This document shows, one piece after another, positions 6,034-46,481 of a stretch of DNA of 64,000 nt. Every line of letters begins with the position of its first letter. Positions within the stretch are counted from its first letter, which is position 1. The position numbers were made by a program, and so were the translations under genes. The notes beneath the pieces are model-generated. The model was given only the letters and a program-made list of their open reading frames with translations, ran no database searches and was not told where the DNA came from. The DNA comes from Takakia lepidozioides (taxonomy: Eukaryota > Plantae > Bryophyta): positions 28,768,001-28,832,000 of the forward strand of contig CM060731.1 in the NCBI GenBank assembly GCA_030704615.1. Direction: 5' to 3'.

Positions 6034-6198
6034 ATAGCCTTGTGGCCATTGACCCCGCGCCCAGTTTGAGCGGGAACAAAAGGGACAGAACCTACCTCTG
6101 TCAGGGGCTGACGTTGGTAGTAAGACTTACCTCCATATAAAGAATTAATCCGGGTTTTCCAGATATCCTCTAGAAATCCCTTCACACAAGCATCAATC
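6034..6198 (+). repeat. Dispersed repeat, probable LTR remnant; inverted homologue at 53097-53260
   Basis: TAGCCTTGTGG..GACCCCGCGCCCA..GGAACAAAAGGG..CACACAAGCATCAATC matches the reverse complement of 53097-53260. Confidence 0.55.
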
Positions 6199-12561: not shown

Positions 12562-12599
12562 TAATCTCTAGAGTACTGTCCACAAACCAAAAGCTGAGT

Positions 12600-13667
12600 T
12601 CATGTAACTGCCAACTCTTTGTCAAAAACTTCAAAGGTATAATCCACAGGGCAGGCTGGCAGACAACGCCAACGCGTACTAACGGAATCAAACGCCCACC
12701 ACTTCCGTGCACTTATGAGAGGCTGTACATTGTGTGCAAGACCAGCCAACATGTAAACCCATTCCTCCTTGATCCCTACCCGCTTGCGAGTCTCAAAGAT
12801 GTTGTTGCAGCCTTCATCATCAACCCCCGCTAGCGCATTCTGCCATTTCTTACAACACCGCACTTTAAGAATGGCCAATGTCAGGCCCACTGCCTTGCAA
12901 ACTAATGTTTTTTAATTTAAAAATTGATATGATCATTACAACAATCATATTCAACTCATGGGATACCGTTATGCTTCCCTAGGATGTAGGTGGGAGAGCT
13001 CGGGGTGTAGGTGGCGAAGCTCAGGGTATAACCGGGGGAACCCGGGACGTAGTTAGGGAAGCCCACGGTATAACCGGGGGAGCCTGGGACATAGTTGGGG
13101 GAAGCTGGGGTATAACTAGGGGAATTCAAAGTATCACATCCATCCAAAGCAACATCCTCGGATTCTGAGGTGTACTCGACGTAATCATCCACCTAAGTTC
13201 ATGCCCAATAACAAATAACTAAGTGAGAATATTACTTAGATTAAAACCGTGTAACTAATAGTAATTCAACTTAATAATTAAATACGCACCTAAACTTTAA
13301 TTACAAGAAAATGAACAGACTACTTTTAAAATGAGAAAAGACTTAGTGAGTAATAAATTACCTGCTGATGTGGGGAAAGAGGAGGGGGCGACTCTACGTC
13401 ACCTTCTTCGACATAATCATCCACCTGAGTTCAAATACAATAATAAATAACTAAATTAGAATATTACTTAGATTAAAATCGTATAACTAATACTAATTCA
13501 TACTTAATAAATAAATACGCACCTAAACTTTAACTATAAAAAATGAATATGCTACTTTCAAAATGAAAAAAGACTTAATGAAATAATAAATTACCTACCG
13601 ATGTGGGGAAAGAGGAGGGGCCCGGGGATGACCCGACGCCATCTTCTTTGTTTTCTCTCATTCTCCT
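12600..13667 (-). pseudogene. Spliced gene relic of unknown function with a 232-bp exon-intron tandem duplication and Pol II CTD-like heptads
   Basis: GT-AG exons 13424-13362, 13192-12967 and 12889-12600 join in frame; the upstream duplicate exon ends in CAG>TAG. Confidence 0.5.
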
Positions 13668-14820: not shown

Positions 14821-15504
14821 AGGGTTACACGATCCATAGAATCAGTGACAGGTGGACGCATAATAACTTCAGGAAAATGGCTGACGGAAGAAAAAACGGA
14901 AACTAGTTTAAAAATAGACACGTGGAGGTCAGGGCGCGACACACAGCTGAGAAGGAAGTGCAAGACCAGGTGTCATAAAGAAAGAGGACAAGAACGGCCG
15001 TCAAAAGGGATGAAAGGCGGGCCCATTAATGAATACGGAAAAAGGGAAACGGAACGAACGGCAAATACAGAAAAGCGAAATTCTTGTCACATGTGTGATC
15101 CTAGTGGACTATCCAGCAGGGAAAATCCACTAAAGAAAATAAAATCTAAAATCCATTCACAGCGGAGACAGCCAATAGAAAACCAGAGAAAGGATCAAGA
15201 AAATGGAGGGAAATTGAGCGCAAGAGGCGGCGTCGTTCTGAGTAACGGGCGTCTCGACGGGACAGACCATCAATGCTATAGCTTGGAAGCTATGGAGGAA
15301 CTAACAAATTATACGCTCGCAATATTACTTACGCAGCATAGACACGAAAGAACAGAGCGGAGCTTTTCTCTTGAGCGATGCTTGCAAGCCCCGCAAGCTT
15401 ACAAGAAATTACCCATAGCCTTCTGTGGCAACCATACGTTTATGCTTTGTGCACTACAGGCATTTCTGCAGTTGTTACAGCCAAAATAGTTCTGTGAGTC
15501 TAAA

Positions 15505-18500
15505 ATGAAGAGAGTGAGAGGAATGGAGGAAATCAGGGTGAAGAGCACCACAATTCTGCAGAAACAAACGATTGCTACCCCACAGGCGATACAAATACTG
15601 GAGGAGCTGAGATTGCAAGGATTGCAAAGCCTAGATTGGACATTACACCATAGACAGTACATGTTACAATTTTTGCAGAACTTTGAACCAAGGACAGGAA
15701 CGACAACGGTGAAGGGAGTTGAATTAATGATTACTCCCCTATACCTCCAGCAATTGTTTCGATTGCCAGCAGGTCAGGTGCATGTGGAGGAACACAGGGC
15801 AAGACTGCAAATAGGGGACTTATTCCAAGAAGGGAGTTTCTTTAAAACTCAGGGTTATGCTTGTACCAAGGCTGTGTACCCAGGGCTAAAAGAGGTAGGC
15901 CAGGTATTGAACGTTCTGATTGCCATGAAACAGAACCAACAGTATTTGAGCAGATCCTTCACGGAGGAAATACTCAAAGGCCTGAAGGGACAAGAGGTAC
16001 AATGGGCAGACATAATGTACAACGCACTGGTGGAGGAGATGAAAAGATTACAAGGTACTACCGCAAAGTCTCATATCATAGTGTCTGGCCCAATCATTGC
16101 TCAAATAATTCTTGATTCTGGCATACTTGATGCGCAAGAAAGAAAGGAGATGGGAGTGTTTGAGCCATAAACCACTGCAATGGAAGAGCAAGGCTCTTCA
16201 CACAGTGAGGGTGGACTAGCAGGGCAACCCAAGACTAAGAGGCAGAGACGGGGAAAGACTGTAGTGGCGGATCCACTGGCTTCACGGATTCCGCATGATA
16301 ATGTTTCCCAAGCTCATGTGCAGGAAGGGCCACAGCAGCACAGAGAAATGCTATTACTGGAAGCAGGACCTTCAGAGAGGGAGGAGGAAGTTACTTCAGC
16401 ATCACAACCATCACAGCCAGCTGATCGACTTGTCACAAGGTCACAAGTTGTCCATGCAGCTCAACCAGAAATAATTGATTTGGAAAGAGAAGGGTTAGAT
16501 ATTCCAACTACAGAATAGATAGTGGCAGAAATGGAGAAGGGGGACCTTCTCTATGAATATTCTGGTCTGGTCAAGGAGACAGAGATTCCAGAGGTGCAAC
16601 AGTTGCCCAAAGGAAATCCTGAGGTGCATATAATATACACACCTGTGTCGGAGGTACCATAGGCGGAAGGTCATGACACTGTAGCACCGGTGATAGATGA
16701 AGTGGTTCAGGAAGAAAATCCGGTGGGACAATGGCCTGAGTGGTTCGTGAGACATCACACTGTTGAGGATCAGGAGGAATAGCAGCAACCTCACCATGAT
16801 GACCCTCAACAGGCAATGCTGATGAGTTCCATAGGCAGGACACTTAATTTGTTGGGGACTTATGTCAAATCCCATGTTCCAACTACCCAATTGACAGCCT
16901 TGAGAGAGGAACTCAGGAAGGAATTTGAGGCTCGACTAGCCACTGAGTGTGCAAACAAGGTCGATGAAGAGGTCACTCTCAAGATGCAGCAGGACTTGGA
17001 AAATACAGAAGCGGCTTTGCAATTGGCCAAGGAACAATTGATTGAGGCAGGCCTCGCGCAAGATCAGTTGCACGAAGCACATAAGCAACAACTATACCAA
17101 ATGCAGGTGCAACATGAAAGCAAGTTGCAAGAAGTGAATGCACTACATACGGAGTTGCAGACAGTGCATGACAGGATGGCGATACAATGTGCTACATTCA
17201 CAACTATGCTTGACCAATCTACAAAAGAAATAAACAATCAAGCGGAAAAATGTACGAAGGCAGAAGAAGAGAATGTTGAGCAAATGAAACTCATTGTCGA
17301 TATGAAGAATACAATCTGTCGCAATGAGGATGCTTTCAAGCAATACAGGCAGGTTGAAGCTGATCAAGAGAAGCACATCGTGGAGTTGCACCAAACGATC
17401 ATGGCCAATAGAAATGAAATCGCGGTCAATAACAAGGCTTGGAGGGAAGCTAATAATCTGGCTGCTGCTTATGCAAATTTGGTTGAACCTCAGGCGAAGC
17501 GCATGGAGGCTTTACAACAGCAGTTAGAAGTGTACAAGCTAAGAGATGAGCAAACTCTCAGGGGAACCACAAGCAACTTGGTGGATAACAGCCTTATGCA
17601 GGTCTGGTTAGCACAAGGGCCAGTAGAGGGCAAAGCACCACGAAAACTCACCCAAAGCGAGATGAATGAGCTCAGACTACAAGTGCAGAACATTGCCACA
17701 ATTACTATAGACAATGTCTATAGTAGAATAGCAGAGTTACAGGAGGATGTAGACGGACTGCAGACTCAAGTGGAGGACCTCACTTCAAACATCGACAAAA
17801 GAGTCTATATCGCTCAGGAATAGCTAATGGCTTCTTATTTACAAGCCAGAACTTTGGCTTTTCAGTCTTCACAGGAGGTGCAGGAGATGCCAATGATACA
17901 AGAGCCAGTACCACCAACACCACAACAAGTCACTGTACCAGTAGCTGAACCTGTTGTTACTACAACCACACCACAGCCACCACAGCCTGAGGTATGGGGC
18001 AATGCTGCTTTTAACCCACCTAAAACTCCAGCTGCAAGGGAGTACAGTAGGGCTATGATTATGCCATTCAACCAAATTCCCATCATGTTGGATTTGGCTT
18101 GGAAAGAATTTAGTCCTCCGCAGTCATTCGCACATTACTACCAAATCATGCGCATCTGGCTGCCAGTGGCAACTAGGACTAAAGTTCTTCCGAACAATCG
18201 ATCAATTGAGGATCATCACTTTGCACAGTACTGGCACGAGGCAGGTACCATGTTGAGGGAATTAATTGCTTTCCAGGTTGTACATGGACTCATTTATACC
18301 AAGACTAAGGAGGTAGCAAGTATTGTCATGGGATGCGGGTTATACTACGCTGCTTGTTTTCTGGTACGTTATCACATTGAGCAACAAAAGATGCAAACAC
18401 GTTTTCTGAGTTATTCCAGTGGAGATCATTGGGTATTACCTTCGGTGCCACCTCATATGTACCTATATGACCCAAAAGTTATGATGCAAAAGGATTCTCA

Positions 18501-19056
18501 AATTCGTTCATGGTTTCAAGCGGCCTGGAACAATTTGTCAACACAGAAATTCGGCATTGATGATATTTTCTATAAGGGACATGTGGCATGGAAATACTTG
18601 CACGCTGCACCAGTAATTGGTACCCCACTCACCTGGACAGACAAAGAGCTCAGTGTCTACACCAATTTTGCTGTTCAACGGTTACACCAAGTTGTAAAAT
18701 ATAAACTTCCAGACATGGTAGGACAACATTGTATGCCCCAAAGGATTCCACAAAAAGTTCGAAAATTAAAACACCTGAGAGGCAATGAGGATTCTGATAC
18801 AACTGCTTCTTCACCGAATTCTTTTGACATGGGAGAAGACTATGCAGTTCAGATGGCAGAGAAGAAGCGACGGGGGTCTCCTATGCCGGAAAGGTTACCT
18901 CGATATCAACCTCCAGAGGGCCTCACTTATCCAGGTAGTGATCAACCATCTCCGTCAAACAGAGACAGACCTTGGGCTCGTACACACAGTCCGCCACGAA
19001 ACTCTCAACGTCAAAAAGATGCTCACTCACAAAGGTTTGCTAATCGAAATCAGTAA
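15505..19056 (+). pseudogene. Retrotransposon extra ORF (~1,180 codons), interrupted only by in-frame stops
   Basis: ORFs 15505, 16180, 16816, 17827 (and 14845) share one frame; stops are sense codons in the second copy; N-terminal QFLQNF..VKGVELMITP..LFRLP resembles Athila/plant-transposon accessory domains; long coiled coil follows. Confidence 0.85.
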
Positions 19057-26839: not shown

Positions 26840-29800
26840 CTATACCCTTCAACTTATTGGCATGACTCTTCCCAGTATTTCTTTTGTAATGGTTTGTAAC
26901 ATGGCGGTGTTGTTATCATACATCTTTGTATGAATAGGTCCTTTCCATGGTGATTAAGCTTAGAAGCTTTATCTTTCCCTTCTTCTGCAACCATAGAACC
27001 AAATTTCCCGTCTTAAAAGTCTTTAACTTGCCTTCATTAACTGTTCCTTCCTCTTCATCGGAATTCTCGTCATATTATCAGCTGCATCAGCAGTACTTCT
27101 TCCACATGGTATAATTCATGTTTCCTGACCTTAATGGAATCTTGCAATTCCATCTCTTTCCCATTCCGTTCTCATGGTAGGTAACAGGAATTCCACTGGT
27201 GGAAGTAAAACTTCCATACCATAAACTAATTGGAATGGTGTATACTAGTGGTGACTTTATATGAAGTCTTGTATGACCACAAAGCTGTCAGCAGCTTTGT
27301 ATCCCAATCCGTTCTGTTTGCATTGACTATCTTAGTCAAGATAGTACATAGTATTTTGTTGGTAGCCTCTGCCTGCCCATTACCTGTGGGTAATATGTTG
27401 TACTCTTCCTATGCACAATTAGGAACTCTTTAGTCAATAATTCATGGTCTCATTAATGAAGTGACTTCCCTGATCCCTGATAAATTCCAAGGGACAGCCA
27501 AATCGTGTAAGTATGTTCTCATACAGAAACCTTGCTGTGGACTTGGCTGTGTTGTCCCTCAAAGCTTTAGCTTCCACCCACTTCGTAGTATAATCAGTGG
27601 TTGTAATTATGTACCTGTTCTGTGTATTCTGGCTGGTGGGTTAATTGGTCCAACAAAGTCTAGTCCCCATTTCTGAAATGGTTCCGTAGGCATTGTAGGA
27701 TGCAAAGCCATTTCCCAGATCTTTGCAAGGTCCTAGCCTCTGACATTCATCACAACTCTGACAATATTTGTGTACATCTTTGAACAAAGTAGGCCACCAG
27801 TAACCTGCATGTAGTATTTTCCTGCTGGTAGTCTCTTCTCCAAAATGACCTCCTGCCACTCGTTTATGAACTTCCTCCAAAACTTATTACCTTCATGGTG
27901 GTATAAGCATCGCTTCAGCACTCCATCTCGTCCTAGCTCATACATTCTGCTCCCTACCATAGTATAAGGTAGAGCCTTGATAGCAATTCTCTTTCTCTGC
28001 TCCTTTCCATAACTTGGTGGGCACTGACCTTGAGCAAGGTAGTATCTGATTGGCCACTGCCAATCTAACCAGTCATCTGCACTTCCCTGCACCTCCACTG
28101 CAAATAGACTCGCATCTGGTAATTGATCATCTACTCCTGTGGTGGTTCTCCTGTTGATAACCGTGACAAGTGATCCGCCACAAGATGCAGTCTCCCAGGC
28201 TTGTAAACAACCTCGAACCTCAAACTCGTGCAAGATTATCAACCATCTTGCTATTCTTCCGCTTATCAGAGGTTTGTTTACCAGGTATATCAGAGCCTGG
28301 TGATCCACATAGAACATAAACTTCTTGCCCAACAAGTAATGCCTGAATTTCTTCACTGCATAGATCATTGCCAATGCTTCTCTTTCCGTGTGCTATAATT
28401 CTTTCGGCATTGTTCATCAATCGGCTAGCATAGTACACAGGTGAATCTATCATTCCTGTTACATTTTGGGATAACACTGCTCCTAGTGCTTCTCCAGAAT
28501 CATCACAGTGAACATGAAATATTTCCTGCCAGTGAGGACTAATCAGCACAGGTGTAGTTGTTACTGACAATGTAAGTTCCTCAAAAGCCTGTTGACATTC
28601 AGCTGTCCATGCAAACACTGCATCTTTCTTCAGAAGCTTGCTCAATGGTGCTGCTATCTGTGCATACCTTTTGACAAATCTTCTGTAATAACTGGTTTGT
28701 CCAAGGAATCTCCTTAGACTCTTAACATTTACTGGTGGTGGAGAGGCTTTAATGGCCTCTGTCTTGTTTGGGGATCCACAAGAAGTCCCCTCTTACACAC
28801 AATGTGTCCCAAAAAGCACCCTGAGTTCACACAGAAAGTACACTTCTCTGGATTCAGGCCCAGACCTCTCATCCTGCATCTGGCCAAACATAACTCCAAT
28901 TTATGCAAGTGCTCATTCTTAGAGCTGTACACACTGAAATCATCCAAGAACACCTGCATGAATCATCCAGATATCATGAAAAGATTCACTTATCACTCTC
29001 TGAAAGGTTGCTAGTGCATTACAAAGTCCAAAGGGCATGAATTTGTATGCATAAGCACCCCAGTCTGTGATGAAAGTTGTCTTTCCTTGGTCTTCTTCTG
29101 CCACTTGCACTTGATTATAACACTTGAAGCCATCCATGAATGACTACATCTCATGGCCTGCCACAGTGTCCAACACCGCTTCTGTGAATGGCAAAGGAAA
29201 AGGATCTTTCTTCGTGCAAGCATTCAACTTCTTATAGTTCACACAAACTCTCAGTTTACCATTCTTCTTGGGAACTATCACAATGGGTGACAACCAAGTT
29301 GTATACTCTATTGGGTATATAAACTTAGCCTCAGCCAACTTCTTGATCTCTTCTCCAACCTTCTGTGCGTAGTTGGGATTCATTCTGTACCTTGCTTGCT
29401 TGATTGGTACTGACCCCGGTTCCAGTTCAATCTTATGATGACAGATTTCAAGTGGTATCCCTTTTAAATCCTCATAGCTCCAAGCAAATACATCTGTATT
29501 TGATGAACAAACTCTTAGCTTCTTCAAAGAATTCTGGCTCCAATCAGCTCCTACCTTTCACCATCCTCGGTTCCTCTTGAGTTCCCACATTCACTCCCTC
29601 ACTTGCTCATCAGCTGTGATTGTCCAACCAGTCACCACTTCATCCTGTAAACTCACAGTGGCTGGTTCCTCTAGGATTTCCATTTCTCCTTCTTTTTCTT
29701 CATAGAAATGTGATGGGTAACTGCTGGTTTCCTCTTCAATCGGTGTTGTTGACACTACACCACAGCAGATACCCCTTAAACAACTTAGGCTTCCAGCCGC

Positions 29801-30832
29801 ATCTCTGCAACCTGCTCCCACTCGGGTGTGCAGCAAATAGGGTAGCTTCCTGCTCCTCATCCAGTCCTTCTCTCCAGTCATACTCTCTGACCCCTCGAGG
29901 TCTTCTCGTAGCAGGTAATCTACTAGATTTTTTGTGGTAATTTGTATCTCATGCATCCCATTATGCACGGTTAGTAACTGAGAATTCCAGCCATGGAATA
30001 CCCTGGCCTGTTTCAGCCACGGACGTCCCAATAATAAGGAGTAAGCCTCCATGACTTCATCCATTTTCAACACAGTTACTGTGATCATAAAGATCATCTT
30101 TTGAATCTGTATCTTAACTCCTCTTATCAATCCCAATGGTTGTACACTTCTTTGATCTGCCATTGTTACTGTAAATGGGGCTGGTTTCATGTTACTTAGG
30201 CCAAGCTTCTTTCGTAATTGGTCTGTCATGATGTTCACTCCAGAGCCTCCATCTATCAATACATCAGTTAGTTCTGTGCTTCCAATTTTCAATTGGATTA
30301 CTGGCATAGAATCATCAAAGTCCATGACTGTTTCTCGCCCTTCCGGCTTCACATTATAACTGGTCACCTTGCTGTTTAGGTCTGTGTTTCCTGTCACATG
30401 GGCAATTCGATTGATTGCTTGATACAGCCTGTGTCTACAATAAGGTGCCACAGCCAATAGCTATCCAATGGTAATCTCCGCTTTGGTCTGGCATATTACT
30501 TCAGCCAAAGTCCCTTCATTACTTTGCATGTCTGCACTTCTTTCTTCCTTTCATCCTCACTCACTCTTCTTCTCCATCAGAATCAGAGGAATCTGCCACA
30601 GGAATATCAGTGCTCTTCTGCATTTCCCTTATGGTATCTGCCACTTTCTTGTGCAGTTCCTTCTCATCTCTCCAAGCCTCATCATCTTCAGGCATATCAC
30701 TGCCACCTTCATTATCATCCTCTTCCTCTACTACTATAGGTATTAGTTTGGCTTTACTTCTTGTTACTATCATTGTACTTACTTTTGGTACAACACATGG
30801 CCTAACCATGTGAGCTGCCACCACTGTGCCCT
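26840..30832 (-). pseudogene. pol of copy C: protease, RT, RNase H, integrase (frameshifted)
   Basis: LIDGGSGVNI; VVPKKNGKLRVC-like, MPFGLCNA, VFLDDFSV; VYYASR, KKFRHYLLG, VDHQAL; GHFG..CDECQR; WKGP. Confidence 0.93.
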
Positions 30833-31618
30833 GGGGGGTGCTATTCCGTGAGCCTGGAGGCGTGAGCCTGTGAGCCCAGGAAAGCGTGAGCCCAGCACAG
30901 GCTCACGCCACGTCAGCATGCAAACAGTGCCTATTTCCGCGGATGTCACCTATTTCCGAGTGGTGTCACCTATTTCCGCGGGTTGATGTGGGGAGAATTG
31001 AGAATTGAGAACAAAGTGTTTGTTTGTTTTTGCAATGTACTCAAGTCTGTGAGGTCCACAAAACAACAAATATATTGAAGGAACAATCCGGGCAGTCCAT
31101 GCAACCCCCATCTCCAACAATAGTTTGGAACCATGAATGTGAATTCCATGCACACATTGCAAAGAGGACAATAAGGACACACAACCATCCCATTTCAAAT
31201 TTGTCCCAGAATTAAACCAAAAGAATACTTCATATCAAGTGTCGCAGTCATCACAATCAATGTCCACCTCCTGTGCTATGTCATCTACAAAGATTCTGGC
31301 CCCAACACCACGTGTTCTACGAAGGCCATCGCAAGGTGGACTCTGAGTGCCATGAACGGACATGCTTGCTGCGAGTGCCTCCGCATAGACAGGTAGCACA
31401 CAAGACCGAGGAGGACTGAAAACAAGTCCAAATAGGTGTGATAGCCCAGGAGGGCAAGTGGAAGCACGCGGACTCCTACACATGTCCACAAAATCCCATT
31501 TTTAACACAATGATGCAATGCACAAGTCCAACGAAGAGGATGTCTCCCATGTGCACTTTGCCTCAAGAACAGCGATTCTCGATATTGAAACAACAATGCA
31601 AGCATGCACAGGTTCAAC

Positions 31619-34600
31619 TTACTCACAGGCAAAGTCGGAGTCCAGCTCCTTGTCAGAAGTCTCCTCTGTACCAGTATCAGCGGGACGGGGCTTCGGAAGG
31701 ACCTGAGAAGTGTGTCCACCCAAACCCATCAGGAGGTTCTTGTAAATCTCAGCATCCCCTTCAATCCCAAAGACATGTCGCGCACTGGCCTTGCAAGCGT
31801 GGTACGAAGCACCTGCAGTGGAATAGAATGAAGTAAGCAGACATTGAAGACACATTCGGAACGGTGGAAAGTGCTGAAAGTGCAAGCTCAATCAAACCTC
31901 ATGAAATGTGAATGTTGAAGAGACGAACCTGTGCCCATCGACAAATCCAGAACTCTGGCGTCTGTGTAGGTGCAGCACTCCACAATCGTTTGAATGAAAG
32001 CCGGGCTCCTCTCCCTCGCCCCTCTCCAAGGAACCCCATTCCCCCTTCGCAAGCACACGTTGCTGTCGACGTAGTTGTGATGCATGTCATCCGTGGGAGG
32101 ATCTGTCCTGTCATCTATGAACTTGCCCCCGTGAGTGATGGCAAACTCCGTAATGCCGGCCGGAGTCGTTGGTGGATGCACCCGGACGAGACAAACAGCT
32201 TCAAACAGACGAGTCTGCGAACATGACATCCACAAGGAACTAAGAACCAAAATAAAATCGGGCCCCTACATATGAGTTGGAGCGACCTATACAACACAAT
32301 CCCAGAACAAAAAAGAAGAGGAAGAAGAAGGGAAACTCACCATCTCTCCCGGACGATCCCCCTTCGTAAGGTACATGCTGTTCACACAATTCCATGTCTT
32401 CACGACTCTCATGCCCGAGGCTTTCAAATAGCTGGCAAGGGCACGGCGACACCGAACATCGATGGACTGGATGAGAACCAAAACACCTGCATCGGAAAGG
32501 AAGAAGTTGCAAAAGGAAAAAACCCACCGCCAGTAGCGCTCATCAAAGTCCAAGATGATGAGTCCGCTTGCCTATGGCTTCTCTCCCGTTCACCCACGAT
32601 TTGGTCATTTTAGCCTGCAAACAAAAATACAAGGAATTTGACAAGTTTATAAACGATCCATGTCCAAGATGATGAGTCCGCTTGCCTATGGCTTCTCTCC
32701 CGTTCACCCACGATTTGGTCATTTTAGCCTGCAACAAAAATACAAGGAATTTCTGACAAGTTTATAAACGATCCATGCCCACAGCAGACAAAGAGAGCAG
32801 AAACCACAGAACCCAAGAGAACACGCACCGTGCTGAGGAACTCGACAATCCTCTCCCACACTGGTGATGGCTCGCCCTTGTAATCAGATTTCTTCGACTC
32901 CATCATTGCAAGGAACCCGACGTTGGCAATCTCCACCTGGTTGACGAATGACCCTCGTGGGATGTTCCACTGCATGGTACGGGTCCTTGGGATCAACCAC
33001 CCCTTGTTTTTTCTCCCGGATCCCCTACCATCAGTGGAGTCTGCTGGACATGCTCCACAGGGCCAATAGCTGCAACACTTCCCTGCCCTTGTGCCACCTT
33101 CCCTCTACCCCTTCCCTCTCTGAAGGAGGGCAATCAAATACCAAACCACAAGAAGAAAAGAAGAAAGATGGTCGACCCAGTCATTCTCTGAAGGAGGGCA
33201 ATCAAATACCAAACCACAAGAAGAAAAGAAGAAAGATGGTCGACCCAGTCATGCAAGAACCAGCAGGAACATGGTCTGGTTGCCAGCAGGGACAAGCCAA
33301 AGGTCCACGAAATCTGGTGTTTGCCAAGCAATCTCTTCCAAGAGAACAACTTAATGTACCGCAGGAACAGACAAGCCTCATTTTCCAATGACTATTTGGG
33401 TCCCAGCTTTTTCAACACACCAGGAAGACCCCCTTAAACAGTATGCCACACAACACATTGGCAACCACAACACAAGCAAAGAGTGCAAGGGTGTGCACCT
33501 GTAAAGGCATCGTTTCCAGGGCTTCCTCTCCTTTTTCCTGCTGGTCAAGCTCATTTGTTCGACTGATGCACCCCCTCCTTTGCTTGAACTCTCTAAAGAA
33601 ACCAGAGTGCCACACTGTGGCTCTCCATTTCCCTCATGTATGCTTCGAAGGAGACCTTCGGAGCTGTCATAGTGATGCCATAGTCAGCCAGCTGAGTATG
33701 CAGAACCGATCGGGCCCTTTCTTCCAACTGCAAACAATTGAAATGGAAGAATGAACCCGAAAACAGTCACAGCGAATGTAAGAGGCAATGGGAAGAGAAG
33801 GACAGAAAAGAGAAAAGAAAGTGAGTACGACTGAGGACATCACACCTGGCTCCAGTAAGTGGCCTTGTGAAGCCAGGTTGTCCAGCACATTGTCACTGAC
33901 AGGAACGACACGATGGGTCTTCTTCTCCTTCTCTGGCCTTGGAACAATGTGGGTATCCCTAACTGTGGGATCGGAGTTCCATATCTGTAGCCACTTTCAC
34001 CTTCTGTTCAGAAGACACACGGCGGGGGTAGACAACCTGTGAAAAATTCTCCTGGGCATCTCCGGCTTGCCTGGCTTGTTATAATGGTTTTTTATCTCCA
34101 GGAGAAATGCGGCCCGAATGATGGGTCGGCCATTCTCAACTGCTTCACAAAAGCACTCCTTATGTCCTTCTTTGTAGGTTCATCTCCTTCTGGATGTGAC
34201 TTTCAACCCCCTTTGCTGTCCTTCTCTCCTCAGGGGTAGGGTAGAGCTGTATGTAGTATTCAGTTTGCCACGCTCCCTGCATCTGCAATGTCTTCCTGCA
34301 AAGGAATGCAAGAGAGTTTGCATCAATCCAAGGTCAAGGGAGACAGACAGAAACAAACATGTGGAAGCAGGAAAGGAATATGGAAAGGCCAGATGAAGAA
34401 GATGTATCTCACCGTGTACATGTACTCAATGAAAGCCTCACGGGTCAACGAAGTACCATGTTTCCGAAGTCTTGGAGCTTCGCATTTCTTATACATCTCT
34501 GCCGAAAGGTGGTCTTGAAGTTGGTCAAGGCATCTGCCCGATCCTTTGTATCCTATACAGTGTGTGAACCAGACTCGTTTTGACATGCGATGTCTCCGTC

Positions 34601-37600
34601 CTCTGCAGAATGATATCTGAATTTCAGAATGTAATTCAAGGACTTGAATCAAGGAAGAACGGAACAGAGAAGTGAAACATGTACACTGAGAAACCAACCT
34701 GTTCAATCATTTCATTGCCGTCAGAAGACCCATCATGTTGTCGTCACAATCAAGCACCATCGATCGAACAGAGTAATAGCCACTCTTCCTCATGTTGTGA
34801 GTGCAGCCTCCAATGACAGCCATCCATGCAAGCAACGGGTGGTTGCCATCCAAAACGTGAAAACATCTTCCCGAGATACTTGGGTGGAAGGTTTCCTGGA
34901 GAGAAGAAGTCGAAGGATTCGTTCCCTGTCTCCAAAAGGGGTCCCAGGAGTCGACGATTGACTCATCCAAAAGGAGCTGTTACTCTAGAATCCCTAGTAG
35001 AAACGTAAAAGACTGCGGATCCATCCAAATACCATGAACAAACTCGGCCTCCAGCTTGAGAATGTCTGTGACAAGGGTGGACGAACGACGGGCATGGAAA
35101 CAACCTACACAGGGAATCTTCAACCTCCCACAGGAGCAAGCATACTTTGAACCACAAGCGAGTTTTTCACCTTTGACCCCCCCAGCATCTCAGGCGGCTT
35201 GCTTTCATAAAACTCATCGTCAACATCACTATGGTCTCCTTCCCCTGACCCTGAAGGGACCTCATCCGCCACCACTTTGCATTTTCTCCTGCAAGGTTTG
35301 TTCACTCAATTCTTATAAGAGAGGAATGAAACGTCGCACCGATGCATGGAAAAAGTGGGATATAAAAGGTAAGTGTTCTTTGAGCTGCCAGGTAAGTGTT
35401 CATTGTCCTCACGGACCTGCACTATGTTTCCCGATTTTCACAGGGAAAGAACATTGAAAAGTTCTGCTCAAATATCTGCCCATGAGGGCCGAAAGTTGCG
35501 CCCCTTCAATATTGCATATGTTCTGCCTAAACAGTGTGCGGTTCCGCGACGTTTGAGCTGAAGTTGAAGGGTTCATTTTATACTCAGAAATGTGCCCCTG
35601 AAGTCCAAATTTTGCCACCCAGAAAATTGAAATGCTCAGCTCAAACACTGTACGTTTGCTGCACGCACACTTGTTTGGGCTGACAGTGAAGGATTCATAT
35701 CATCCCAGAGGGGTGCCCTGAAGTTCCAAATTTTTGCAGCCTGCTGAAACATTGAAGTTTTCCCTCAAACAGAGTGCGTTGCACCCGACACTGTCCGAGC
35801 TGGCATGAAGGGTTCATTTCACCTAACATAACAGACATCAAGACCAAATTTTGAACCCTAAAACATTGAAAAGGTCTGCTCAAACAGTGTGCGTTGTTGC
35901 CGCACACTGTTTGAGCTGGTTTTGAAGGTTTCATTTCAATCCTCAGATAACAGGACAGCAAAGACCAAATTTTGCACCCCTCTAACATTGAAATGTTCAG
36001 CTCAAACAGTTGTGCGTTGCCGACACACTGTCTGAGCTGGCGTGAGGGTTCATTTCACCCTCACATAACAGACATCAAGACCAAATTTTGCACCCTAAAA
36101 CAGGGAAATGTTCAGCTCAAACAGTGTGGTTGCCGCACACTGTTTGAGCTGGCAGCCACAGTGTTCATTTCATCCTGAGATAGGTGCCCCTGAAGTAAAA
36201 TTTTGCCCCAGAAGAGAAACATTGAAAATGCTCAGCTCAAACCGTGTGCGTTGCCGCACACTGTCTGAGGCTGGCAGTGAAGGGTTCATTTCACCCTCAC
36301 ACAGGTGCCCCTGAATGAAGTCCAAAATTTTGCACCCAAAGAAACATTGAAATGCTCAGTCAAACAGTGTGCGTTGTTGCCGCACACTGTCTGACTGGCA
36401 GTGAAGGGTTCATTTCACCCTCACACAGGTGCCCCTGAAGTCCCAAATTTTGCACCCAGAAACATTGAAAATGCTCAGCTCAAACAGTGTGCGTTGCCGC
36501 ACACTGTCTGAGCTGTGGCAGTGAAGGGTTCATTTCACCCTCACATAACAGAACATCAACAAGACCAAATTTTGCACCCTAAAACATTGAAATGCTCAGC
36601 TCAACAGGTGTGCGTTGCCGCACACTGTCTGAGCTGCAGTGAAGGGTTCATTTCACCCTCACCTAACAGACTCAAGACCAAATTTTGCACCTAAAACATT
36701 GAAATGCTCAGCTCAAACAGTGTGCGTTGCCGCACACTGTTTGAGCTGGCAGAACAGTGTCATTTCATCCTGAGATAGGTGCCCTGAAGTCCAAATTTTG
36801 CACCAAGAAACATTGAAGTTGCTTTGCTCAAACAGTGTGCGTTGCCGCACACTGTTTGGGCTGACAGTGAAGGGTCATTTCATCCTCAAACAGGTGCCCC
36901 TGAAGACCAAATTTTGCACCTATAACATTGAAATGTTCAGCTCAAAAAGTGTGCGTTGCCCGCAACCGTTTGGGCTGACAGTGAAGGGTTTCATTTCACC
37001 TTCAAACAGGTGCCCCCTGAAGACCAAATTTTGCACCCAGAAACATTGAAATGTTCAGCTCGAAACAGTGTGCGTGCCGCACACTGTTTGGGCTGACAGT
37101 GAAGGGTTCATTCATCCTCAGAGAGGGCCTCTGAAGAGTCCAAATTTTGCACCCTGATGAACATGAAGTTGTTCAGCTCAAACAGTGTGCGTTGCCGCAC
37201 ACTGTTTGGGGGCTGACTGGTGAAGGGTTCATTTCATCCCCAACAGGTGCCCCTGAAGTCCAAATTTTGCACCCTGAAAACATTGAAGTGTCAGCTCAAA
37301 CAGTATGCGTTGCCGCACAATTGTTCGCTGACAGTGTGGGGGTTTCATTTCATCCTCAGAAGGCTGCCCCTGGAGTTCAAATTTTCCACCCAGAAACATT
37401 AAATGCTCAGCTCAAACAGTGGGCGTTGCCGCACACTGTTAGCTGGCAGTGAAGGTTCATTTCACACTCACATAACAGACATCAAGACCAAATTTGACCC
37501 TAAAACATTGAAATGTCAGCTCAAACAGTGTGCGTTGCCGCACACTGTTGAGCTGAAGAACAGTGTTCATTTCATCCTGAGAAGGTGCCCCTGAAGTCCA

Positions 37601-39445
37601 AATTTTGCACCAAGAAACATGAAGTGCTCAGCTCAAACAGTGTGCGTTGCCGCACACTGTGTGGGCTGACAGTGAAGGGTTCATTTCATCCTCAAACAGG
37701 TGCCCTGAAGACAAATTTTGCACCCTATAACATTGAAATGTTCAGCTCAAACAGTGTGCGTTGCCGCACACTGTTTGGGCTGACAGTGAAGGGTTCATTT
37801 CATCCTCCAAACAGGTGCCCGTGAAGACCAATTTGCACCCAGAAAAACATGAAATGTTCAGCTCAAACAGTGTGCGTTGCCGCACACTGTTTGAGCTGCA
37901 GCACTGTTCATTTCATCCTGAGATAGGTGCCCCTGAAGTCAAAATTTTGCACCAAGAAACATTGAAGTGCTCAGCTCAAACAGTGTGTGCGTTGCCGCAC
38001 CCTGTTTGGGCTGCAGTGAAGGGTTCATTTCATCCTCAAACAGGTGCCCCTGAAGACCCAAATTTTTGCACCCAGAACATTGAAATGTTCAGCTCGAACA
38101 GTGTGCGTTGCCGCACACTGTTTGGGCTGACAGTGAAGGGTTCATCTCATCCTCAGAGAGGTGCCTCTGAAGTCCAAATTTTGCACCCTGAAACATTGAA
38201 GTATTCACTCAAACAGTGTGCGTTGCCGCACACTGTTTGGGCTGACATTGAAAGGGTTCATTTCATCCTCAAATGGTGCCCCTGAAGTCCAAATTTTGCA
38301 CCCTGAAACATTGAAGTGTTCAGCTCAAACAGTATGCGTTGCCGCACACTGTTTAAGCTGACAGTGTGTAGGGTTCATTTCATCCTCAGATAGGTGCCCC
38401 TGGAGTTCAAATTTTCCACCCTGAAACATTGAAATGTTCAGCTCAAACAGTGTGCGTTGCCGCACACTGTTTGAGCTGGTAGGCAGGGTTGGGTTCATTC
38501 CATCCTCAGAAAGGTACCCATGAAGTCCAAATTTTGCACCCTTAAACATTGAAATGTTCAGCTCAAACAGTGTGCGTTGCCGCACACTGTTTGAGCTGGC
38601 ATTGCAGGTTCACTCCATCCTCAGGAAAGGTACCCATGAAGTCCAAATTTTGCACCCTTAAACATTGAAATGTTCAGCTCAAACAGTGTGCGTTGCCGCA
38701 CACTGTTTGAGCTGCGCAGTGCAGGGTTCATTCCATCCTCAGAAAGGTGCCCCTGAAGTCCAAATTTTGCACCCAGAAACATTGAAATGTTCAGCTCAAA
38801 CAGTGTGCGGCGCCGCACACTGTTTGGGCTGGCGGGAAGGGTTCATTTCACCTGCAGAAACTGACTGCAAGGCCAATTGCACCCTACAACATTGAAAAGA
38901 TCTGCTCAAACAGTGTGCGTTGCCGCACACTGTTTGAGCTGGCAGTGCGGGGTCATTTCATCCTCAGAAAGGTGTGTTGAAAAGGAAGAATTTTGCACCC
39001 TAAACAGTGACATGTGACAGCTAAAAAGGGTGCGGCAACGCACACTGTTTGAGCTGCGTGAATGGTTCTTTCTTTCACAAAATACCTGCCATTGAAAGCC
39101 GATTCTTCACAAATATGGGTCCTGTAGATTTTACCTTTTTCCAGCTACTCGAGAAGACTCCCAGTTGCCGGGGACCCTTTCCGCTTCGGGCTGCTCTCTT
39201 CGCCGACTATGTAGGGTGAGCCTCTCCCCCTTCCTCTTTCCCGTGGTCAGATCGTTCGTGAGGCCAGTGTCAACATCTTCCTCCATGTCGTCTGTCTCTC
39301 CCTCAGACGCAGTGTCCTCCTCGCTTGTTCCTGGAACTATGGTGGGTTGTTTGTTCTTCTCCAGATTCCTGCTCCTCCATCGCCACACTTTCCTGTATTC
39401 CTCTTCTTCCTCCTTTTCCTCTTCCTCCACTCTTTCCATCCTCAT
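31619..39445 (-). CDS. MULE accessory gene (multi-exon, frameshifted as assembled): acidic N-terminus, ParB/Srx-like segment, beta-class N4C/N6A DNA methyltransferase-like C-terminus
   Basis: In-frame GT-AG joins 39135>35288, 32341>32214, 31929>31812. ParB-like: VRP..DILKLEAEFVHG..FYVS..FHVLDGNHPLLAW. MTase-like: (A)DLIILD..FFLSDAGVLVLI..PWRGARERSPAFIQTIVECCTYTDARVLDLSMGT|GASYHACKASARHVFGIEGDAEIY. Start codon and middle exons uncertain. Confidence 0.72.
32549..32780. repeat. ~113-bp tandem duplication spanning an acceptor and exon start
   Basis: GTCCAAGATGATGAGTCCGC..AAACGATCCATG occurs twice. Confidence 0.85.
33117..33252. repeat. ~68-bp tandem duplication
   Basis: CTCTGAAGGAGGGCAATC..GACCCAGTCAT occurs twice. 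Confidence 0.85.
35430..39060. repeat. Tandem array of about 30 x ~119-bp units, each with an 18-bp-stem palindrome
   Basis: Core CAGCTCAAACAGTGTGCG-TTGC-CGCACACTGTTTGAGCTG flanked by AAATTTTGCACCC..AAACATTGAAATG and GGGTTCATTTCATCCTCA..GGTGCCCCTGAAGTCC. Confidence 0.95.
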
Positions 39446-40576: not shown

Positions 40577-43500
40577 ATGACGAGGATGGGAATTTGGATT
40601 CTGGGCACTTGGAGAAACCCTTGGTTGGCGAGTGTGGAAGGAAAGTGGAGAGTCCTTCCAGGAACATACCGTGTCCTTGGAAAAGAGAGAGAAGACAACA
40701 GCAGGATCAGTCGTTACCCCTGGCACTGCAGCATCGGTCGTGCAACAGAAGGGCACAGTTCCTGTGAAACAAGAGGTGAGCACATCCACTACCTTCGTTA
40801 CTCTTTCGGACTCGTCCTCGGAGGATGATGTTTCTGAGATTCCTCCGCCAGTGCAAACTCCCTTATTGGATGATGACGAATTGCAAGAGATAACAAGTGT
40901 CATTCCAAAATGAAATGAAAGCCCTCGCAGGTGTGCCTGGGTGCAAGAGCGAGCTACGTTTTGTTGATTGGGAGTCCCTTCCAGTGCAACAGGTTCAATA
41001 CGTGCCAGCTCAGTTTGATGGGGACATCTTGTTTGAGCTCAACCCTCCCACGTCTTCCAGTGGACTAGCTTTGCTTCTGCAGGGCATGGACAAGAAACAT
41101 GACGGACATCCTTGGTGCAGGACAAAAACTTCGAACATCCATAACGACATTGGCTTGAAATTTCGGAGGTCGGTTTTGCGTTGGGCATTGCAAGTGCCTG
41201 AATATTTCTTGCCCTCCTCGGCTGAGAAACAGCGCTCAGCCAAACGAAAGTGAGTGGGAAGGTGTGCCCCTGAATCCTTTCACCCCAGGGCTTGCACCTC
41301 CCAAGACCAATACTTTTGTGTGCAGGTTCTGCAAACTTTCCCCGTCCTGTGTTTCTGTTTGCCACGCTCGTATGTATCAGGTGGCACATCGATGCAAGAC
41401 AATGACTCGTGCCTGCATTCATATGGGTGCACACGAGCATCCTGTGTCCAAAGGGAGTTGCAGGGATAGCGTGGACATCGCTAGAAATCTACTGAAGCAA
41501 GAGTTCCATAATGCCCCTTCTGCAACACCTTCTGCTATAGCGCTTGCAGCTAGCAAGGCATTCCTGGAAAAAACATACTGGGTGAAGGGATGCGACACAG
41601 CCAATGCTGGATGGATGCAGATTCCCTTGAGGCAGTCAGTCATGGACCATTTCTCCGTGTTGAGCTCTCCCAATATTCGAAACCAGTGTGAATGCACTCA
41701 GAATGGGGCACAGGCACTGCTGGTTGGATTCATGGACAACATTATGGACCTCAAACGGAGGAGTCGCTATGAATTCATTCAAAACAGTATCTCCCTGGCC
41801 AGGGCTCGTCCAAAGTGTATTTGTTCAAGATGTCCGCTGTGTGGGCCAAGGCAGTGTGGTGTGAGCATTGTCCGCCGAATGCAACCTGGAGGAGATTTGG
41901 CTAAATGTTGGTTAATGTTTGATCACTGCAACGGAACGGGTGAAGGGTTGGACAACATGGCGTGCCATGTGTTATGATCCAGCGTACCAGCGTGTGCTCT
42001 CCATAGCAATTTGTGATATGCAGTCGGAGGACACTGAATCCCAGATGCTCATGTGGAATTCCCTCCTGACCGTCATGCAGCGCAATGGAAACAGAACACA
42101 AATTTTGCGGGCTTCATGGCTGATAGTGCACAGGCAAATTTCAATGCAGTGCGGCGCGTGTGTTTGGTTCTGGGGATCCTAAGGTCCCCATGGAAAATAG
42201 GGAGAGCGCACATGCCTCTTCCATTGGAGTCAATCTCTGGCACGTCATACAAAGCGCTGCATTCGCCCTGACCTTCAGTTGGAGCATAGAAGGCTCTGTC
42301 TGAAGTACAAGAATGCCACCTCAATGGGAGAAGCTGAGAGCACTTACCAGGCAATCCGGGATTGGTGGTTCTCCGCTGGTGCTGCTACAGGTATCCACCT
42401 GAAGGAGTTGGAGGACTGGTTGGTGTTTCTGGCACTTCAGGTACAGACAGTGGGGGGAGCTTTCATGACGACGGTAAGCCTCACAAGTTTTCCTTAAACA
42501 CAAATTGCACTTTGCATCGTGCCTGTTCATTTGGGGTTGTTCGATTGTCACTTGAAAACCTCTACCATTTCTTTTCCTTCCTCACATTTCCATGCAATGC
42601 CTCCTGCAGGACATGTCCTTGGAGGACTTGGCCGACATGCCATCGTGTAATTTGGCAGAGACTGTTCACAACGCCTGGATGCAACAGTCTACCAAAGCAG
42701 GTCGTGACTTGTATGTGGCCACTGCTGATGACATGGTGCGGGCACTTAACCAAACCAGGTACCGCAAGTTTTAACTGGGAACGTCGTTCTGTGGACGGGT
42801 GGAGGGAAGGGCCCCGATTCAATTTTCTGATGGGACGGGGTGGAGGGAAGGGCCCGATGACTTTGTGATGTAAGGGCGCGAGTAGGTCGGAGACCGTCAA
42901 AGATGGCCAGAGCTCTAAACAGGTGCACTGAAGGCTCCCCTCTGCAATCCAGGCTCCCCCATTGGAAGGCGAGGAAAGATTTGGATCATGCAAAAGGAAA
43001 TTAAACACTCTTCCAGGTCAGATGGAGATTCCATAGGCCAGACAGGGTCAATTTCTCTGTGCCAAAGGTGTCTCCAGTGCAGACTAAGTCCTGTGCCGGC
43101 CCCTTCCCAGGTGGGTCCTCCTCCTGTGGAGCAGGTGCAGACATGCAAGCATAGCAGCGGAAATCCCATTGGAGGAGGTGGTGGCCATGGTGCAGGAATC
43201 TGATTGCATTGATAGTGACTGGCATATAGAACGCACCCCACCAGGATCTAGAGTGGCTTGCATGGCAATCGGACCCCCTCTTTCAAGAAATGCAAATCAA
43301 AAATATGCAAAGGCTCCAGGGGGACTCCAGCTCCAACATTCACAGGGTGTTCCGACCTTACCATAGTGGGGAGTCAAAAGAACACAAGTTTTGGTTCTGC
43401 CCAGACGATATGGCACGATGCGTGAAGGGAACAGTTCGTCCTTCCGTGATAATGAAGCCCCCTCCCCCGCAATTTGGCCTGTGAAAATTGGGACATCGCT

Positions 43501-44058: not shown

Positions 44059-44474
44059 ACACATACGAGCCATGCCCGCTTCCCATGCTGGTTTCCAGTT
44101 GCCGTGTGAAGACTTTTCATTTATGACAAACATATACATTTCGTTCACTTGTGAGGGCAAATGCACTTGCGATTCATTGTAAGCGTCTCTCTGTGAATTG
44201 AAATAAACTGTGTCAATCATTCTGAGCTCAAATCTGCCATGTTTACATATTCCTCTTTTTTGGCACGCATTGCAGACATGGTGCATGGTGGCCTCCTTTG
44301 TTTTGTCCACGGTAATAGGCCCTCTTCCTGCAATCCTCGCCTATAGACCTGCTTCTCCAGCAGATTCATGCCGCTCACGCTTCCCTGAAGCGTGAGCTCA
44401 GCTCACGCTTCAAAGCTTGAACGTGAGCTCAGCTCCCAGGCTCACGGGGCTGGGCTCACGCCGTAGCTACGCTG

Positions 44475-46481
44475 CTGGGCCCTCATTCACAGGAGCTCTC
44501 ATCTCATTCTGGTGTCTAATCCAGAATGAACAGGCTGCCTTGCGATGTCCTGCTTGATTACAATAGTAACATAGTTCTTCACCATTGGGTCCTCGCCCTT
44601 GGTCTGCTCTTGGATTATTTCTGTAATCCTGATTCCCGGGCTGGTAATTCCCCCTTGGATTACCCTGATAGTTGCCTCTGGAATTTCCTTGGTAATTCCC
44701 TCTTGAATTACCTCTCCCTTCCATGCCATTGTTATAACCACCAGACCTACCATAGTGGTCCTGATCATTGTTTCTTCTTGGCTGGGGCTGCACCTGATGC
44801 ACCCTTACTTGCCTAGGTTCTCTTGAAGCTGTCCTTCTGTTGTAGTAACAATTCTCAGTAGAATGGTTATCCATTTTATAGATAGTACAGTGTTTCTCCT
44901 TCATGTGGCATTCTGTGGTGGTATGGCCTTCATTCTGGCACTTTGCACACCATACACCCTTCCTCCAATGTGTTGCAGCCTCTGTGGCATACTTCTTCAA
45001 GATTTCTTCCAATCTTTTCTCATAGTTATCCCTCTTCAACTTCTCCTTTCTCTTACTCTTCCTTTTTAGTTCTTGCTCTTCTTCTTCATCTGACTCATCC
45101 TCAGAGTCTTCATCATCCCTTTTCTCTATCCTGAGCATCCCAATTGCTCAATTCTGTTTGCAGTTTCAAATGCCTCCTCCACTGTATTATGGGGTAACAA
45201 ATCCACTTTCTTTTGCAACTCTGGTCTTAGTCCACTCACAAACCAAGTCTTCTGTAAACCTGGTGCTGGTACTGCAGCCAGCTTTCTTATCATCAATTCC
45301 ATTTTTTCCATATACTCCTCAACAGTTTCATGCTTCTTTTGCTTTAACTGTTGTAAACTTCCATACACTTCATCCTCGGTTTTACTTGTCCTGAACCTAT
45401 TTCGGAATGCTGTATTCAAGCCATTCCAGGTTAGGAAATGATTATCAGGGAATCTTGCATACCATTCACTTGCTTTCTTGATAAGTGAACAAGGAAACAA
45501 TCTCATCTTGGCATCATCGCCATTCTCATTGTTCACTATACACATGTGCTCAAATTGGCTAATGTGTACATCGGGATCCCCTTTTCCTGAATATATTGGA
45601 AAAGGTGGTTTTGCCCGTGTTGGTTGTAACGCCATCTGTGGCCCTACCTTTTGCCCACTGACAGGTGCTGGCACCCTTGCTGGTGCTGGTCCTTCTGGAC
45701 CTGGTCCTTCTGGACCTGTTGTTGTTGTGGTGGATCTTCCACCAAGTGGTGGCCCTTGAGCACTCCCTGCTTCTGGCCCCACGATATTCACAGTATTCCC
45801 AGCTTCAGTTGCACTACTTCCCACACTCCCTGTCCCCCCAGAGCCAGATCCAGGCAGCCCGCCTGATCCCCCTGAGCCGACACCTTCGTTGGCCTGTGAT
45901 CCAAGTGCTCCACTTGATCCAGGTCCAACGGGTTGGGATGTCCTGGTTGTAGTCTCAACCTCAGCTGTTGGGTCTACTTCTTCATACTCTTCCTCTTCCA
46001 ATTTCTTCTATCTGTTTTCATCCTCCAAGTTCTGCCCTTGGGTTTCTTCTTCACTCATGTAACTCAACTGCAATGGTGTTGGAGAGTCTGAACTCTCCGT
46101 TGGCTCTGCCACATCCTCTCCTCCTTCTTCACCTTCCGCTTCAGAAACTGGAGTTCCTGCTTTTGGTGTTCCATGCCAACTCTTATCAAAGATTTCTGTC
46201 AAATCTTTTATCCAGGGATGTACCTCAGATCTCTCACCTCGTGATTGCTCTTCTTCCCGTACCAATTCCCTTAATCTTTCTTGCAAAGAAAAAGAAGGAG
46301 TGGCATCCAACTCTAGTTCTTCCGGTATGGGTGATGTACTCTCTGATCTTAATGGTGTGAGAGGTCCAGATGATTCCCCTATGTCTATTCCTCTCTCCCA
46401 AAGATATGGATAATTAGCTTTCAGATAGCTTTCTCTTTTTGCTGAATATCTCTGACGTCTAGCTTCTCTTTCATCACTCAT
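44475..46481 (-). pseudogene. gag of copy C
   Basis: FPIYSGKGDPDVHI..FPCSLIKKASEWY..LKQKKHETVEEY; zinc knuckles CAKCQNEGHTTTEC and CYYCNQAGHRKAAC. Confidence 0.92.

Follow-up and report, generated by a model that had tools for sequence, protein, structure and literature searches.

The window analysed here comprises 64,000 nucleotides of the Takakia lepidozioides assembly GCA_030704615.1 (contig CM060731.1, forward-strand positions 28,768,001 to 28,832,000), and all positions given below are counted from its first letter. On its minus strand lie three exons at the 3′ end of a gene resembling beta-class amino-methyltransferases, preceded in the same gene by ParB/Srx-like sequence and accompanied by an array of palindromes (Table 1). 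An earlier note, made from the sequence letters alone, had proposed a spliced beta-class signature here with the catalytic motif not visible, and had offered a choice between a copy that lost its catalytic loop and a family of pseudo-enzymes binding S-adenosylmethionine (SAM).

The three exons, which we call the motif IV exon, the motif X/I exon and the last exon, join in frame through GT-AG introns, and the junctions are read directly from the sequence; both introns fall exactly where the earlier note had placed them. The peptide quoted there for the three exons covers two of the three, and the string it gave as DLIILD reads GLIILD. The motif IV exon is a remnant (ASGLIILDFDERYWRWVFSFCNFFLSDAGVLVLIQSIDVRCRRALASYLKASGMRVVKTWNCVNSMYLTKGDRPGEM; in short ASGLIILDFDERYWRWVFSFCNFFLSDAGVLVLIQ...PGEM) laid out as ASGLIILD followed by FDERYWRWVFSFCNFFLSDAGVLVLIQ...PGEM. 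The motif X/I exon reads TRLFEAV...PWRGARERSPAFIQTIVECCTYTDARVLDLSMGT, ending VLDLSMGT+G; a variable stretch resembling a target-recognition region is followed by motif X (PWRGARERSPAFIQTIVE) and, as VLDLSMGT, by the beginning of motif I, where intron 31813-31928 interrupts the Gly codon of the residues GTG. The last exon starts after ctgcag/, completes the split Gly codon and continues with ASYHACKASARHVFGIEGDAEIY; the rest of motif I, together with motif II, thus reads G-ASYHACKASARHVFGIEGDAEIY and is followed by an acidic tail. It has counterparts in nine related loci (E 1e-14 to 3e-19).

Table 1. The gene and associated features in the window; a slash marks a splice boundary
Feature	Position	Strand	Remarks
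Last exon	31619..31812	-	coding 31622-31812, stop codon 31619-31621; read from sequence
Intron	31813..31928	-	phase-1 GT-AG, donor G/GTTCGT, acceptor ctgcag/
Motif X/I exon	31929..32214	-	after acceptor cgcag/, ends at donor G/GTTCGT
Intron	32215..32340	-	phase-0 GT-AG, donor GTGAGT, acceptor cgcag
Motif IV exon (motif IV-VIII remnant)	32341..32571	-	ends GAGATG/GTGAGT
Tandem duplication	32548..32776		units 32548-32661 (114 nt) and 32662-32776 (115 nt)
Intron before motif IV exon	32572..32828	-	donor ACG/GTGCGT, acceptor ccatag/
Candidate upstream exon, start not fixed	32829..32990	-	open frame, ends ...PSPVWERIVEFLST
Exon after ParB-like core (..SHVKTSLVHTLYRIQRIGQM..)	34453..34605	-	in-frame stops and frame changes
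ParB/Srx-like exon, same gene	34698..35138	-	in-frame stop 34980-34982; box DGNHPLLAW
Palindrome array	35518..39072		~30 units x 116 nt (Tandem Repeats Finder and inverted-repeat list)

Relatives were sought with the motif X/I exon (31930-32214, 95 residues) among 1.84 billion representative proteins using phmmer. The search returned 16 true relatives (E down to 9e-13), all of them exon-sized open reading frames (ORFs) on unannotated ENA, JGI, Logan and NCBI contigs, and no full-length annotated homologue; a single long match, from Styela, was a spurious repeat protein and was discarded. The contigs examined further (L001-L007 and L009-L018) come from other genomes, richer in AT, and carry this same gene in the order N-terminal block with DGNHR(R/L)QAW, long variable middle and the same three 3′ exons. 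The acceptor of intron 32215-32340 (cag/AC. before T-x-x-F) is kept in 11 loci. Eight loci including the window share the donor within the Gly codon of motif I, and intron 31813-31928 has the same position and phase in L001, L004, L006, L007, L009, L010 and L012; in all 10 loci whose contig reaches the last exon, ag/ precedes G[AS][ST]. Conservation of the splice joins, which the earlier note had put forward as a check on the model, holds in position and phase for the 9-11 related loci reaching each junction, with the exceptions of L002 and L003 (motif I donor mutated) and L006 (motif IV exon donor one base out). Between L006 and L007 the ratio of nonsynonymous to synonymous substitution rates (dN/dS) is 0.12 at dS 0.20 over 249 codons of the domain, which is under purifying selection in these relatives.

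Use of one junction can be followed in a paralogue. Two runs from the same organism, X2 and X3, putatively RNA, hold contigs that are ~84% identical to 31927-32216 and represent a paralogue; these continue into the start of the last exon, where 26 of 30 letters match 31781-31810, with junction 31812/31929 joined. Of the two introns for which the earlier note had suggested an RNA check, 31813-31928 is spliced out in these putative transcript contigs of the paralogue. The same contigs (2253 nt in X2, 2005 nt in X3) join 31927-32216, 34529-34601 and 34813-34862 with just 311 and 113 unaligned letters between, and the paralogue transcript may be without the long middle region of the gene. On the window copy itself, neither X2 nor X3 places a contig of at least 95% identity; no RNA-labelled sequence holds that copy, and only the ~84% paralogue contigs align to it.

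Judged by profile comparison, the domain encoded by the three exons is a true, distant homologue of the beta-class (PF01555-type) amino-methyltransferases. The three exon segments of six loci were spliced locally, aligned and compared as a profile with Escherichia coli YhdJ, which was itself aligned with its close relatives. Using hhalign, the spliced family matched the YhdJ family with a probability of 93.3% (E 2.8e-7, 210 columns) and YhdJ alone with one of 95.3% (E 2.1e-8). The match is collinear over 202-210 columns (YhdJ 33-264) and runs through motifs IV-VIII first and then X, I and II, the circularly permuted order by which the beta class is recognized. Among the controls, the reversed profile scored 0.1%, five column shuffles scored at most 4.4%, and the unpermuted PrmA scored 4.8% on 52 columns. 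Taken singly, the motif IV exon aligns with YhdJ 33-93 (P 0.005), placing VDLVIADiPEG on VDLIFADPPYN and LHDDGA on LK..GT, and the motif X/I exon with YhdJ 141-228 (P 2.8e-4), placing EKsP.FmQ.lIe..VlD on QKPeaLLeRII..VLD.

Other methods point the same way. PF01555 is touched at E <=1 by 6 of 17 family members, all below threshold, and a language-model search from the motif IV exon gave 100 neighbours, of which 60 are PF01555 clusters. Profile searches of PDB sequences from single-exon alignments returned nothing significant; the motif X/I exon there came closest to 5hfj, a beta-class adenine methyltransferase (E 0.86). An AlphaFold model of the motif IV exon (121 residues) has a mean predicted local distance difference test score (pLDDT) of 81.6 and forms a strand-helix-strand-helix half-domain. 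Its top rows in VIA-align are nearly all class I methyltransferases (Z 4-6.3, best 6.3), with the beta-class enzymes matched through their N-terminal halves (Z 4.1-4.8) and unpermuted enzymes through the C-terminal half, as expected of a permuted domain. The beta-class signature of the earlier note is thereby supported by the hhalign match to YhdJ, the sub-threshold PF01555 matches, the language-model neighbours and the half-domain model.

On the SAM side the family keeps the consensus of motifs X (REK.P.FMQ.LIE), I (V.D.T..TG[AS][ST]) and II (..[LI]E.D). In motif I the Asp is invariant and is followed by [GAS]TG[AS][ST], the Pro and Phe of DPF being lost; the SAM-side residues align with VLDPFxGS..T and GIE of YhdJ. 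The catalytic motif is another matter. DPPY, SPPY or NPPY occurs in 0 of 30 relatives of the motif IV exon, and in no frame of the window copy is there a DPPY or SPPY, just as the earlier note had remarked. In its place the 30 relatives have the loop consensus D-[IYFM]-P-[ED]-G-L-P-V-P-G, then ..P...IP.WN and later LHDDGA, with D, P and GLPVPG at least 90% conserved though overall identity is 20-45%. Because dN/dS is as low as given above, this variant loop is maintained by selection and is not decayed. Scans for the patterns GLPVPG and LHDDG across 185,579 prokaryotic species genomes (one each) and IMG/VR gave pattern matches only and no relative with this loop. In N4CMT, mutating the Ser and Tyr of SPPY abolishes activity (PMC8885841), and by analogy the change of Tyr to Asp or Glu would end canonical base-amino methylation.

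The window copy has lost even this variant loop. A family profile built without the window matches that copy only at profile positions 55-122 (E 3e-14), and nothing corresponding to positions 1-54 occurs in any of the six frames of 31000-36000; the upstream open frame WNIPRG...VEIANVGF, considered as a displaced motif IV, was rejected when that search of the six frames gave nothing. The closest relative, L005, is 60% identical over 67 residues (BLASTP, window 10-76 against L005 33-99, E 6e-32) and carries the full loop (..DLVVLDIPDGLPVPDVLPSNATPTCNKSDSRYWQW..), reading AYATDLVVLD-IPDGLPVPDVLPSNATPTCNK-SDSRYWQWAFSF where the window has ASGLIILD-FDERYWRWVFSF. Since BLASTP pairs D-E-R-Y-W of the window with D-S-R-Y-W of L005, the 21 missing residues start directly after ..LD, at the end of a duplicated unit. 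These 21 codons (63 nt) hold IPD-GLPVP... in relatives, and of motif IV the window copy keeps the first Asp alone. It shares with L005 the form LSD[AS]G in place of LHDDG, which, given its presence in L005, is a subfamily trait and not decay.

The duplication at this place was detected as repeat families D1, D3 and D4 (95-100% identity, spacing 113-115), and its unit limits were set by reading the sequence. Each unit runs from the last part of the preceding intron across its acceptor ccatag/ into the exon, of which it takes in eight codons (ASGLIILD), and it stops at the GAC (Asp) codon of ..ILD, where the missing loop should start. The 113-bp duplication breakpoint that the earlier note had located at this position is real and lies right after the Asp codon, with units one or two letters longer than it had stated. 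Splicing from the duplicated upstream acceptor yields ASGLIILDMDRL-stop. The 63-nt deletion and the 114-bp duplication have a common breakpoint, which suggests one complex repair event. The relatives compared at this site come from other genomes.

The duplication also lengthens intron 32572-32828, whose acceptor is homologous to cag/GCATAC of L005. Beyond this intron, the end of the candidate upstream exon resembles the ..ERKVYF.G.. stretch that precedes VDLVIAD in the family, and may correspond to it; the family profile has no significant match to this candidate. An alternative exon start at ttgcag/GCTAAAATG (frame AKMTKSW...) was rejected, as that frame runs into a stop and the homologous acceptor of L005 stands directly before A-Y-A-T-D-L. 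In the direction of the gene, an exact 68-bp tandem duplication (33117-33252; 2.0 copies, 100% matches) precedes the candidate exon ending ..EFLST by ~300 bp.

Further lesions lie in the 5′ part of the gene. The stop at 34980-34982 interrupts a block that relatives keep as one continuous ORF, and the ParB box has changed to DGNHPLLAW (Arg to Pro) from the DGNHR(R/L)QAW of relatives. Downstream of the ParB-like core, tblastn with L001 and L006 peptides places stops inside the aligned block of 34453-34605, with continuation in another frame; these stops and frame changes lie in 34453-34540, again a continuous ORF in relatives. To judge from the loop deletion, the decoy acceptor, the nonsense codon, the frame breaks and the ParB-box change, the window copy is a pseudogene as a whole, which the earlier note had not recognized. 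Both of the alternatives in the earlier note are then partly right: this copy deleted its loop, and family-wide the DPPY motif has been replaced, with SAM binding presumably retained. Relatives are damaged too. The motif IV exon of L001 has lost 1 nt (~3310), L002 (~1767) and L003 have GGT changed to TGT at the motif I donor, and L006 (~10370) has an extra G at the donor of the motif IV exon; by these signs the family is made up largely of decaying copies.

The DGNHR(R/L)QAW box of the N-terminal block is at least 90% conserved in relatives and has the form (D)G.HR..A of the ParB/Srx box, and the block gives no match to PF02195 in relatives. A model of this domain from a relative (P0177) has a pLDDT of 74.6 (core 80-93), and ~26 of its top 30 Foldseek rows are ParB, Noc, sulfiredoxin, PadC and serine-kinase/SbnI-type proteins, with KorB at rank 41 and a best E of 0.18. 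The block is highly multi-copy, occurring as 333 clusters on metagenome and Logan contigs. The palindrome array lies inside a long intron of the ParB/methyltransferase-like gene, and each of its units contains a 40-nt near-palindrome (CAGCTCAAACAGTGTGCG..CGCACACTGTTTGAGCTG). A distant relative, L014, has two arrays (11580-13379 and 14960-18714; ~9-10 units x 192 nt) at equivalent sites inside or next to the gene, and for this reason arrays beside the gene may be a family trait.

Around the gene, a string of ORFs at 40632-42868 (plus strand) could be what is left of a Mutator-type transposase. Clusters of FLYWCH, GCM, FAR1 and MULE are among the language-model neighbours of 41264-41977 (scores 0.82-0.89, a lead only). 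At both proposed element ends (30833-30960 and 44400-44480) a CGTGAGCC(C/T)(A/G)G motif recurs several times in inverted orientation, and these CGTGAGCC-type repeats look more like subterminal binding-site repeats than one long terminal repeat. Retroelement fragments flank the element at 29591-30457 and 44467-45138 (both minus strand); one flank has a gag-type aspartyl protease (E 2e-4), the opposite one a CCHC zinc-knuckle gag (E 8e-4). In L014, ORFs with Pfam DUF4218 and DUF4216 lie directly upstream of the gene on the same strand (6146-8079). These two domains are associated with CACTA/En-Spm transposases. If that association applies here, more than one transposon superfamily may carry the cargo gene, or the arrangement may be a nested insertion.

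We consider it likely that 31619-32571 is the 3′ half of a multi-exon, transposon-borne gene joining a ParB/Srx-like domain to a beta-class methyltransferase-like domain, that the catalytic loop has been replaced throughout the family, and that the window copy is a pseudogene. Intact relatives encode an N-terminal ParB/Srx-like domain and a C-terminal permuted SAM-methyltransferase-like domain. In the window copy the 63-nt deletion took out the variant loop entirely, beginning just behind the first Asp, and the duplication abutting the deletion point added a decoy acceptor leading to a stop.

Several observations weigh against this reading. In Pfam scans, where the exons were scored apart, the ORFs of four window exons have no match, and the best exon of a relative (L006) reaches PF01555 at E 1.3e-4 and 22.4 bits against a gathering score of 26.7; the HMMER comparison with PF01555 that the earlier note had proposed gives no match for the window exons and sub-threshold matches for relatives. 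Foldseek E values for the half-domain model are at least 0.4 (none <=0.001), which we attribute to only half a domain having been folded, and M.BceJIV, CcrM and M.MboIIA recur among the matches; on the proposed test of a Rossmann methyltransferase fold, the model resembles class I methyltransferases and its Foldseek scores are not significant. The Mutator transposase is not confirmed, as the ORFs in 40632-42868 give no Pfam family. The splicing contigs stem from the paralogue and not from the window copy, in runs only guessed to be RNA. Finally, the three 3′ exons of the window copy (~235 codons) are still open and keep those residues of motifs X, I and II that are invariant; since they are open the decay is not old, and it may be recent or the 3′ part may still be constrained.

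That last point is the starting point for a different account, in which the short form is a working subfamily variant: the downstream acceptor at 32571 would give a GLIILD-FDERYW protein, SAM-binding and without the loop, and the upstream 'lesions' would be unrecognized introns or assembly errors. The frame is indeed open through all three exons, the invariant family residues N47, G65, R67, E68 and D90 are kept, and LSD[AS]G, being shared with L005, is not decay. However, L005 as the closest relative has the full DIPDGLPVP loop, the duplicated acceptor leads to a premature stop, the stop at 34980-34982 and the breaks at 34453-34540 sit in what are continuous ORFs in relatives, and the putative RNA runs hold no contig at least 95% identical to the window copy; we regard a working short form as quite improbable. 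That the methyltransferase likeness arose by chance, from short motifs in transposon DNA without coding function, is already refuted. Such an origin would agree with the missing Pfam hits of the window exons and with the non-significant single-exon PDB profile searches, but not with phmmer E values down to 9e-13, a 210-column hhalign match of 93-95% with clean controls, conserved splice sites and purifying selection in relatives.

A more serious alternative concerns the family and not the window copy. Its members could be active nucleic-acid or protein methyltransferases in which the D-x-P-[ED] loop is catalytic for another acceptor atom or substrate. The strong conservation of loop and domain (dN/dS again) fits this, as does retention of the first Asp, of one Pro of the tetrapeptide and of the SAM-side acidic residues. 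Against it, the aromatic side chain that amino-methyltransferases stack against the flipped base has become Asp or Glu in 30 of 30 members, the Ser and Tyr mutants of N4CMT are inactive (PMC8885841), and a literature search gave no enzyme with this loop. On balance we think an active variant unlikely, though well short of negligible.

Returning to the reading of a family with a replaced loop, we infer that its proteins bind SAM without carrying out canonical base-amino methylation. They could be a pseudo-methyltransferase or reader module led by the ParB-like domain to the element's own palindrome arrays, or an enzyme with changed substrate. As a tentative proposal, which we hold to be possible and no better than that, intact members may form a transposon self-recognition system. 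The ParB/Srx-like domain would load on the element's own palindromes, and the methyltransferase-like domain with its conserved D-I-P-[DE]-GLPVPG loop would there write an unusual mark or sense or block host methylation, so protecting the element from silencing or organizing its transposition. The gene would then descend, in a eukaryote and with introns, from prokaryotic fusions of ParB and methylase, its active site turned to a new use.

Eukaryotes very rarely have permuted amino-methyltransferases of bacterial type: N4CMT was reported without a eukaryotic homologue (PMC8885841), and land plants were reported to have few N6-adenine methyltransferases (PMC4738411). The present family stands out in being abundant and transposon-borne, with intron positions that are fixed and hence old, purifying selection, and DPPY exchanged for another conserved loop. 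This makes it a clean test case for the re-purposing of the methyltransferase fold; with its own palindrome arrays next to it, it is also a candidate for a chromatin or DNA-recognition factor encoded by a transposon. The window locus serves mainly as a control, a dead copy whose 'missing motif' is a local deletion on top of a family-wide substitution.

Our literature search found no description of this family, and the nearest systems each share part of its make-up. Fusions of a ParB N-terminal domain to beta-class methyltransferases are common on phages and plasmids. ParB-linked methylases of phages have been described (PMC4738411). The bacterial and phage PF01555 enzymes (E. coli YhdJ, CcrM, M.BceJIV, M.MboIIA, M1.HpyAVI) have the same permuted order and motif X, I and II signatures, and the half-domain model aligns with the N-terminal halves of MboIIA, HpyAVI, CcrM and BceJIV. 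Unlike them, the family has D-[IYFM]-P-[ED]-GLPVPG and not (D/N/S)PP(Y/F/W), scores below the Pfam gathering threshold, has spliceosomal introns at conserved positions, and is multi-copy and transposon-borne in plants. The VANC anti-silencing proteins of Arabidopsis VANDAL (Mutator-like) elements are accessory DNA-binding proteins that recognize short motifs arrayed in the element's own non-coding DNA. To our knowledge VANC proteins have neither a ParB nor a methyltransferase domain, and their likeness to this family is a functional analogy only.

METTL14 and the methyltransferase domain of the DIRS1 retrotransposon (PMC4738411) likewise combine a conserved fold with disrupted active-site motifs and a proposed binding role, and DIRS1 is also transposon-encoded; they belong to other clades (MT-A70, PCIF1-like), and the variant loop of our family is highly conserved, unlike simple degeneration. 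Accessory genes of red-algal Plavaka elements (10.1101/2025.02.11.637652) encode an N6-adenine methylase with SET (PAG2) and a ParB domain with a 2-oxoglutarate oxygenase (PAG3) by inverted-repeat arrays. Common to both systems are a DNA transposon with a ParB protein, a domain of DNA-modification type and tandem arrays of inverted repeats, and self-binding was proposed there as well. Plavaka differs in superfamily and host, its ParB is fused to the oxygenase and not to the methylase, and no variant catalytic motif was reported for that methylase. The canonical eukaryotic PF01555 enzymes are bdelloid N4CMT (PMC8885841) and Marchantia DN4MT1a/b (10.1101/2021.02.12.428880), which likewise place a permuted bacterial-type domain in an intron-bearing eukaryote and have a transposon link. 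Those are host genes that keep (T)SPPY and are shown or argued to write N4-methylcytosine, N4CMT being fused to a chromodomain, whereas the Takakia gene and its relatives are without SPPY or DPPY, are fused to a ParB-like domain and are carried by transposons.

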